From the NCBI GenBank assembly GCA_964188305.1, contig OZ076897.1: a DNA stretch of 64,000 bases. One strand, written 5' to 3'. The stretch is from Podarcis bocagei. Taxonomy: Eukaryota. The notes below the pieces were generated by a model. The model ran no database searches. It saw nothing but the letters and a program-made list of their open reading frames with translations, and was not told where the DNA came from. The position numbers were made by a program, and so were the translations under genes. Positions 31,601 through 34,600 of the stretch are shown in pieces (within the stretch, counting starts at the first letter, position 1; each line of letters opens with the position of its first letter).

Positions 31601-34600
31601 GAGGGGCTTCCTTATTATTGGCTATATGGAAGGAGTGCCTTGGATACTCGTGTTTTAAGAGTCCATGAAACTACTACAAGCGCCCAATGACTAAAAGTCA
31701 TTTCCTATGTGTTACCATCCTCTTTCTTCTGGTGTTAATCTGGAAGAGCTGAAACTAGTAATGATATTGATATACATTAACCTTTAGCACAATTTCAGAA
31801 TTGCTGCTCACTGGAAGGACAGATTGTGAAGCTGAGGCTCCAGTACTTTGGCCACCTCATGAGAAGAGAAGACTCCCTGGAAAAGACCCTGATGTTGGGA
31901 AAGATGGAGGGCACAAGGGGACGACAGAGGACAAGATGGTTGGATACTGTTCTCGAAGCTACCAGCATGAGTTTGACCAAACGGCGGGAGGCAGTGGAAG
32001 ACAGGAGTGCCTGGCGTGCTCTGGTCCATGGGGTGACGGAGAGTCAGAAACGACTAAACGACTAAACAACAACAAACCTTTAGCAAGGCATTTCCTTTCC
32101 GATTCTTCCTTGGGAGAATGAGGACTCTGAGTTCTTTGCTCAGTTTTAGAACCAAGAAGTGTCTGCCTTATACTCAGGGTCTGACGAGGTGTTTTGGGAG
32201 ATGGCTCAGTTTTGCCGCTCGAAGCACTGAAAAAATAAAATTATATTATTCATAAGCAGAGGGCCAATATTTCAGATCAAATGAGCTATTAGACTGCAAC
32301 ATGGCTGCTTACCTCATCATTGTGTTGTATTCTTTAATTCTCCCCCTAATTAGGTCCCTGCTTGTGACCCCTGCATTCTGTAAAATGAATTGAGAAATAT
32401 TGTTCAGACCATGCTTTAAACAACTGAGATTATCTAGCCACATTCAGGAGACAGTAAACCATAAGAAAGACAAAGTAGTATAACTATAAGCTCAGATATG
32501 TGCAAGCTTCATGTACCCCCCCCCACCCCCTTCCTGCAAGCAAGGAAGCACACCAGGAACCTTAGCTGACCATTGCTACATCCAAACCCAGAAACTACAG
32601 TTATTGGCTTCCAAAGAAACTATGATAGATAACCATGGTTTAAACCTGACTTCTGAATTCTGGCTTGTTTCGTTCATTAAGCCAGGATTTGGTCATGCAT
32701 ATATAGTTGATGTATGTAACACGTTAAAAAAGGAAAAAGAAAAGCGGGCAGGGAAGACACAGGAAGGGCAGAATTCAGTGTATAAGATGCTGTGCGTCTT
32801 AAACCAGGGTGCCCACCAGATGCTGTGAACTATAACACCTATCACCTCAGCTAGTGTTGCGAATGGGAGTTGCAGTCCGCAACATGGAGGGCACCAGGTT
32901 GGCTACCCCTGCCTTGAGCATGGACTGCTATTACACACTGAATTGCAGACATAGCTGAAAACATCTGAAAGAAAGTAGAAGCAATTTTACAAGCCAAAGC
33001 ACTGAGGACAAAAATCAGTAAACAGTATACCCTTATCCTGAATTGCATTTATCTTCAATTAACTTTATGTGACTAATGGTTCTTAAAAATCACAACTAAC
33101 TGCACACTTATCTGCCTACCAATCTACACAGGCATTGCAACAGCTGTGGAAAACAGCAACACCTTCTCGTCATGTTCTTATGACAAATCCTCTCCGGGAA
33201 CAATCATAGTATTCCAAGAAACAGAGTAGCTCGAAACTATGACTAATACCTGTGTAAAAGATCACCAACTATTCCTATTCACATCTGCCCACGTGTGTGT
33301 GTGTGTGTGTGTGTATCTTAAGCGCACTATTCTTATAAATCTATTCCACATCAAACACGTTATCTGCAGATTCACATTCAATGCAGTCCACTTTTACAAG
33401 ACACTCTTCCTGGCTGCTATTAACAACTGATAGTGTCAGAAGTAGCCTCAATGTCCATGAGTAATGGATGCACAACAGTGCAATCCTATACAAGTCTACT
33501 CAGAAGTAAAGCCTGGTTAAGTTAAATGGGAATTACTTCCAGGTAAATGTACTAAGATTGCTAGTCCGAAAGGAGTTATGTTAGGACTCTGCACCCTGAT
33601 CTCTGCTACAATTTTAAAATATTTAAACCTCAGTATTGGATGGGATTTTCAGATGTGCAGAAGGTGTGGGTGATAGCCAATTAAATTTGGGTTTCATAGC
33701 AACAGGGTACTTCATATGGAACATTACATCATTAAATGGAAATTCAGACCATCTATGATTTAATCATTCACCATTAGAAGTTACATACACCAAAAATAAT
33801 TAATAAGAACAGGAAGGAAAAGAACTAATTAGCAAAAATTCATAAAAAACTGCAATCTATACATACATATCTTGGAGTAAGTATCACTGAATTCAGTGGG
33901 ACTTACTTCTGAGTAGATATTCATAGACTTGCACTGTAAAAGCAGTTTAGGTACAACCGAAAAAGCAGTGTTAATTAACAGTTAGCTAAGCTTCAGTAAA
34001 AGTAACTGAGCCTACTTTTTAACCAGTCTAAAGAAGTTAAATAATTTTAACCACTTCCCTTGGCAAATGATGTTGTTGTTAAAGAGGTCAAACAAAACAG
34101 TTTACTAGAGCTTATTTATTTATATCCCACCTTTCCTCAAAGGATTTCAAGGTGGAGGAATACATCATACACTCTCCATATTATCCTTACAACAACTTTG
34201 TGAGGCAAGGTAGGCTGAGAGGTGTTGACTGGCCCAAAGTTACCCAAAGCTTCTTGGCCGAGTTAGGAACCACACAGCACAACTCTATGCAATTTTACTC
34301 AAAAGTAAGTCTCATTGTGTTTACTTCCTGGTAAATGTGCACAGAACTTCTCCCTTAAGACAGTTATCTTACTTGAATAACGTGCAAATTTTCAGTAGTA
34401 GTTAAAAAAGAAAGTTCAATAGTTTCTCTACTTTCTCTTTCAAAATATTCTAATTAAGACTCTGACTCTGGCACTTATCTGTAAGTTAAGGACAAGGAAC
34501 ACGTGGAGCTCCATATATCAATGGACTCCATCAGCCCCAGACAGCATTGTCAACAGACAGCAATGCCAATGATGTAGCCCAACAAACATCCAAATGGACA

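Follow-up and report, generated by a model that had tools for sequence, protein, structure and literature searches.

A Bov-B insertion at a 5' splice site of ARHGAP21 in Podarcis bocagei and the origin of the old and new donor sites

Selection normally purges retrotransposon insertions from the splice signals of conserved genes, and most of the known cases are disease alleles. The window, by which we mean the whole stretch of Podarcis bocagei DNA that was analysed (64,000 nucleotides), holds a fragment of a Bov-B LINE directly at a 5' splice site of ARHGAP21. The locus raises the question of how the exon end is now spliced, and of where each base of the present donor came from. Our reading, to which we assign a probability of roughly 0.85, is that a Bov-B element was inserted at the donor by target-primed reverse transcription, that the donor was rebuilt in the same event, that the donor proximal to the exon is the one in use, and that the gene has remained functional. 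In the following, a slash marks an exon/intron boundary or an insertion point.

The host gene and the inserted element

ARHGAP21 is encoded on the - strand of the window, and the window exons match lacertid ARHGAP21 at 93–94.5% identity overall. Annotated orthologues were recovered from Podarcis muralis, P. raffonei, P. lilfordi, Zootoca vivipara, Lacerta agilis and many other vertebrates by using the large upstream exon as a query, followed by a region search, and exons were placed by tblastn to the lacertid proteins. The exon of interest (32078–32226, - strand; encoding ASSGK...ERKCLAK) was defined by translation, tblastn and junction refinement. It is 149 nt in length, is preceded by ...ttttcag, ends in phase 1, and is situated between the regions for the PH and RhoGAP domains. 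The next exon (30273–30406, - strand; tblastn and junction refinement) forms the approach to the RhoGAP domain, and its acceptor is ccctttacgaaaaag/G, which ends in aaaaag with the AG at 30408–30407. With 32078 joined to 30406, the translation agrees with the P. raffonei protein at every residue across the junction, and the same residues are present there in the proteins of Podarcis, Lacerta and Zootoca. Over ARHGAP21, the window differs from three Podarcis species by 19–23 amino acids (15–17 among those species themselves), from Zootoca by 29 and from Lacerta by 34. By this measure the window comes from a lacertid close to Podarcis and distinct from the species with annotated proteins.

The splicing context around the 149-nt exon is unusual even without Bov-B. 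The intron before it (32227–32312) comprises only 86 nt and has a strong donor (GAG/GTAAGC), and the acceptor of the exon that follows the insertion (30407–30425) is purine-rich and looks weak. A long (CT)n/(TC)n microsatellite is found at 30150–30200, in the intron directly downstream of the exon starting at 30406. At a greater distance, the + strand carries long ORFs of 188 and 518 aa (within 1697–11410) that resemble exons of a convergent neighbouring gene, and a run of N occurs at ~12.5 kb (about 12500–12700).

The inserted element is a 5'-truncated 3' end of Bov-B, a LINE of the RTE clade, with a length of 285 bp (31790–32074, + strand), which lies antisense to ARHGAP21. It comprises the C-terminus of ORF2, with the last ~76 codons present and in frame, and a tail reading ...GACTAAACGACTAAACAACAACAA, the (CAA)3 of which is at 32067–32075. 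The tail of the lizard element Bov-B_PMu has been described as (CAA)2-6 (PMC13295347). The element is identified as Bov-B on account of the words that it shares with published P. muralis copies, the reference being the supplementary copies longer than 3 kb of Nakatsuka & Ohshima (PMC13295347). Exact matches in this set were found for 7 of the 12 24-mers that tile the element (6–70 occurrences each), and a 16-mer near the element's 5' end, CACTGGAAGGACAGAT, occurs there 99 times. A Pfam search with the C-terminal piece of ORF2 returned no family, and the Atlas gave unnamed clusters only; the + strand ORF that runs across the tail/exon junction retrieved, as a query, other Bov-B copies only. Clear Bov-B homology begins at ~31804. 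For the first ~14 nt of the insert (31790–31803, CAATTTCAGAATTG), no match was seen in the P. lilfordi Bov-B copy or in the published P. muralis copies, and this segment may represent 5'-junction filler or diverged element sequence.

A second and shorter Bov-B 3' fragment is present in the window at 44789–44893 (+ strand, tail (CAA)3). It is the older of the two, since it is present in both species, its counterpart in the P. lilfordi ARHGAP21 locus (L001) being at ~77489–77594. It adjoins a repeat at 44892–45254 that has at least seven further matches in L001, at 77–93% identity, and that opens with units resembling (AAAGGT), which is how the (ACCTTT)n tail reported for Sauria SINEs reads when reverse-complemented; it is probably an antisense Sauria-type SINE. 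The fragment at 44.8 kb was considered as a second clean case of target-site duplication (TSD) and was rejected because the 9–10-bp repeat on its flanks falls on the (AAAGGT)n terminus of the adjacent repeat. An effect through double-stranded RNA was likewise dropped, as there is no inverted Bov-B partner within the window. For a further repeat of ~245 bp (46468–46714), the P. lilfordi locus contains two other copies (86–90% identity) but none at the orthologous position, which makes it a candidate for another lineage-specific insertion.

The duplicated exon boundary and the empty site

A repeat finder returned an exact 11-bp direct repeat, AACCTTTAGCA, at 31779–31789 and 32075–32085, the two copies being 100% identical with a spacing of 296. 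The exon-proximal copy (32075–32085), which reads TGCTAAAGGTT on the gene strand, corresponds to a sequence that is single in P. lilfordi, and the distal copy (31779–31789) abuts the truncated 5' end of Bov-B. The 11-mer spans the final 8 nt of the 149-nt exon and positions +1 to +3 of the intron. The length of the TSD is given here as 10–11 bp, since the A at 32075 is shared by the end of (CAA)3 and the start of the TSD.

Each copy carries a potential donor. At 32078/32077 the - strand reads ...GAAATGCCTTGCTAAAG/GTTTGTTGTTGTTTAGTCG, and the present 5' splice site, GTTTGT (+1 to +6; 32072–32077, - strand), takes its GTT from the target and its TGT from the antisense (CAA)n tail. At 31782/31781 the - strand reads ...GTGCTAAAG/GTTAATGTATA, where the second copy of the 11-mer is followed by AATGTATA. 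Here the displaced ancestral 5' splice site, AAG/GTTAAT (31776–31781, - strand), is now located 296 nt into the intron, and it equals the sole donor of P. lilfordi.

The search for an empty site covered one lacertid locus, that of P. lilfordi (L001), and two geckos (L002 and L003). L001 is collinear with the window at 94–97% identity. The flanks of the insertion align to L001 89581–90112 and 90102–90558, such that the 11-mer is common to both blocks and Bov-B is absent. The sequence at the site is ...GAAATGCCTTGCTAAAG/GTTAATGTATATCAATATC, with one 11-mer and the donor AAG/GTTAAT. The direct repeat in the window is consequently not a product of chance, as one copy stands at the orthologous site in P. 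lilfordi with both flanks abutting exactly. Moreover, P. lilfordi has GTTAAT without any Bov-B, from which it follows that the present positions +4 to +6 are derived from the element and that the displaced GTTAAT is ancestral. In both geckos the exon end is identical, the donor is GTAACT, the intron is unrelated and Bov-B is lacking.

These observations bear out what the first-pass annotation of the window had proposed for the boundary. It had described an exact 11-bp TSD over the exon/intron junction, and all of its coordinates were correct; it had attributed intron +4 to +6 to the Bov-B tail and had taken the AAG/GTTAAT that lies 296 nt downstream for the original donor, and the Bov-B-free locus of P. 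lilfordi, with GTTAAT and not GTTTGT, agrees on both counts. The empty site that it had predicted for a related lacertid was found exactly, whereas GTTTGT, which would have spoken against an origin of the donor in the element, is not there.

The alignments indicate that the intron position is old and that the insertion is specific to the window lineage. No new intron was created, given that P. lilfordi and the two geckos share this exon end. The alignments also show that the donor has been without a G at +5 for long, the lacertid form being GTTAAT and the gecko form GTAACT. The opposite polarity, with Bov-B ancestral and precisely deleted between its TSD copies in P. lilfordi, appears very improbable. 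An exact empty site can be regenerated when short direct repeats recombine, but the precise loss of a LINE is very rare, the geckos are also without the element, the element stands only a few percent from family variants, and the older Bov-B fragment at 44.8 kb has been kept in both the window species and P. lilfordi. Every base of the old and new donors can be traced to its source, and a sister species still shows the site as it was before the insertion.

Donor choice, constraint and age

By simple measures, the rebuilt donor AAG/GTTTGT is predicted to be at least as good as the weak ancestral AAG/GTTAAT. A rough PWM score is 4.81 bits for the new donor versus 4.26 for the old, and the predicted U1 duplex, likewise rough, amounts to -6.0 kcal/mol versus -4.1 kcal/mol. 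On the same rough matrix the new donor ranks as the fourth weakest of the gene's 19 donors in the window, for which the scores range from 2.15 to 10.5 bits, the lowest coming from a junction flagged as uncertain in the gene model. Tolerance of the insertion may have depended specifically on the G at +5 and the T at +6, as the first-pass annotation proposed. The sequence that follows the donor has changed as well: the first 30 nt now include 18 U, with four UUU runs, versus 14 U before the insertion.

Translation of the exon into the antisense Bov-B meets an in-frame TAG at 31959–31961 (- strand), 177 nt upstream of the distal donor. The first-pass annotation had stated that such read-through would add 39 quoted residues before the TAG at 31961–31959, and the translation yields exactly this peptide. 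It had also placed the resulting truncation after the PH domain and before the RhoGAP domain, in accordance with the Pfam domains of P. raffonei ARHGAP21 (PDZ 107–164, PH 960–1064, RhoGAP 1190–1338), in which the junction falls near residue 1143. As RhoGAP lies beyond that junction, the read-through stop would remove the catalytic domain. Within the antisense element there are donor-like sites at 31963, 31856 and 31812, and the predicted products from these three sites and from the old donor are all frameshifted or stop-containing. Upstream of the TAG, only 32078 pairs phase 1 with a positive PWM score.

The coding sequence on either side of the insertion was compared with that of P. lilfordi, from which the window lineage differs by a dS of 0.03–0.05. 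The dN/dS ratio is 0.17 upstream of the site (943 codons) and 0.13 downstream of it (846 codons). Unique to the window lineage are 2 amino-acid changes upstream of the site and 6 downstream of it; the corresponding figures are 7/11 for Lacerta and 4/9 for Zootoca, the ratio for the window being no higher than in either. In the interiors of the RhoGAP exons, the encoded protein is identical to that of P. raffonei. The substitution pattern indicates that ARHGAP21 is still under purifying selection downstream of the insertion. Owing to this selection, together with the identity of the RhoGAP exon interiors to P. raffonei, the new donor is very probably the one that is used. Transcript-derived protein fragments that cross the junction included none above 87% identity and no lacertid match, and a scan of metagenomes for the exon end gave one match, which is unrelated and due to chance.

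It is possible, if in our view rather less probable, that both donors are used, with the ancestral and cryptic sites taking a meaningful share of the transcripts, so that premature stops and NMD would lower or regulate the output of ARHGAP21. This corresponds to the competing productive/poison pair of donors put forward in the first-pass annotation. The distal site is after all the only donor that P. lilfordi has, the PWM scores of the two sites are close, and the antisense element contributes the three further donor-like sites named above. In addition, the stop is positioned 177 nt upstream of the distal donor, which is beyond the 50–55 nt of the NMD rule. Use of the distal donor would, however, give an exon of 445 nt instead of 149 nt, and long internal exons are poorly defined in vertebrates; the proximal site, moreover, is predicted to pair better with U1 and is followed by the U-richer stretch. 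A more elaborate form of this idea, in which the Bov-B tail strengthened a long-weak donor and the ancestral and cryptic donors serve as a regulated, NMD-coupled outlet that tunes ARHGAP21 dosage, is speculative and seems quite doubtful to us. If true, a conserved Rho-GAP gene would have acquired a splicing switch from a transposon.

The continued constraint could also predate the insertion, in which case the element would be a recent, possibly heterozygous and mildly harmful allele of the sequenced individual and would not have stood the test of evolutionary time. We regard this as unlikely, and the age of the element bears on it. Five of the 12 tiling 24-mers are absent from the P. muralis set, and for three of these five the family-typical variants occur 9–82 times; against those variants the element has 7 or more differing positions in the three 24-nt tiles. 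Overall, the private differences correspond to ~9 or more events in 285 nt (roughly 3%), a figure comparable in magnitude to the ~2.4% of neutral divergence per lineage between the window and P. lilfordi. This similarity argues, weakly, against a brand-new allele, since subfamily variants exist and the private differences could reflect subfamily variation or be inherited from the source copy. In favour of a recent allele, the presence of Bov-B was seen in one genome only, with P. lilfordi being without it, and the TSD copies are still identical, although their 22 nt carry almost no dating information.

Four of the differences from family-typical Bov-B fall within a single 24-nt tile (32030–32053), equivalent to intron +25 to +48. 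The typical variant of this tile has 82 occurrences in the P. muralis set and the variant of the element has none. Through two of these changes, motifs that contain GT and resemble donors are lost or weakened (GTGTCC to GTTTCT and GTGACC to GTCACC). The cluster could be due to chance or be a subfamily variant.

Proposed course of the insertion and comparison with known systems

The TSDs of lizard Bov-B begin with A after T and have three T at ~10 nt upstream (PMC13295347). On the sense strand of the element, the insertion site reads CATT/AACCTTTAGCA, so that here too the TSD starts with an A that is preceded by T. The upstream stretch consists of TT only, at 11–12 nt (31767–31768), compared to the T3 of the published signature. 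Given this signature, and since the sense strand of the element is the + strand of the window, the first nick can be assigned to the sense strand of the gene, at GTT^AAT.

On this basis we propose that, after the split from the P. lilfordi lineage, target-primed reverse transcription placed a Bov-B element exactly at the 5' splice site of a constitutive ARHGAP21 exon. We infer the order of the nicks as follows. The first would have cut the sense strand of the gene within GGTT^AATG, at a TpA step that separates intron +3 from +4. The freed ...GGTT-3' end could then have paired with AAC of the (CAA)n tail of the LINE RNA and have been extended as antisense Bov-B cDNA. As the 3' GTT can pair with the AAC of the tail, one base (32075) can be assigned equally well to the tail or to the TSD. 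The first bases of the cDNA, TGT, would have become +4 to +6 and so completed the new donor AAG/GTTTGT. Exon and GTT would have stayed joined throughout, because the primer strand is the coding strand. A second nick, 11 nt upstream and within the exon, would have given rise to the 11-bp TSD and the 285-bp, 5'-truncated copy, and would have left a second TGCTAAAG/GTT, together with the old AAT..., beyond the other end of the element. In this manner the old donor would have been pushed 296 nt into the intron, leaving the new donor to serve productive splicing in a gene that presumably remained functional. The locus would thereby illustrate how a LINE that is primed from the coding strand can enter a donor without harm.

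The event is an ordinary target-primed Bov-B insertion in an unusual place, and it provides a clean and instructive example, with no new mechanism. With Bov-B_PMu of Podarcis muralis (PMC13295347) it shares the sequence of the 3' end, the (CAA)n tail, the 5' truncation, a nick at a TpA step and a TSD at least 10 nt long whose initial A follows a T. It differs in that the exon/intron junction of a conserved gene was hit, which is not the usual neutral landing place, and in that the T3 part of the signature is partial.

Viewed as a natural before-and-after pair, the window and P. lilfordi lend themselves to the study of 5' splice-site turnover, and direct tests are possible both of how donors compete when 296 nt apart and of what an antisense Bov-B tail does to a weak donor. 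TIA-1 binds U-rich sequence downstream of 5' splice sites, most often at +10 to +28, and recruits U1 (PMC4027183). The antisense tail puts GU- and U-rich sequence in this region, and the likeness to the TIA-1/TIAR U-rich enhancers of weak donors (PMC4027183) is a compositional resemblance only.

Introner-type transposons (PMC11282704) have in common with this locus that duplicated target sequence and terminal bases of the element together supply a splice signal, such that the insertion is harmless to the mRNA. Most introners, however, are DNA transposons whose insertion into an exon gives rise to an additional intron (PMC11282704), whereas the LINE described here adds 296 nt to an intron that was already there and substitutes part of its donor, with no gain of an intron. 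Disease-causing L1 and Alu insertions, for example those in NF1 (PMC3219598), are likewise target-primed, are flanked by TSDs and enter splice signals or exon ends. In the NF1 series every insertion disturbed splicing, and cryptic donors internal to the element were sometimes used (PMC3219598). At the ARHGAP21 locus, in contrast to those cases, the donor was reconstituted, in a gene with continued constraint.
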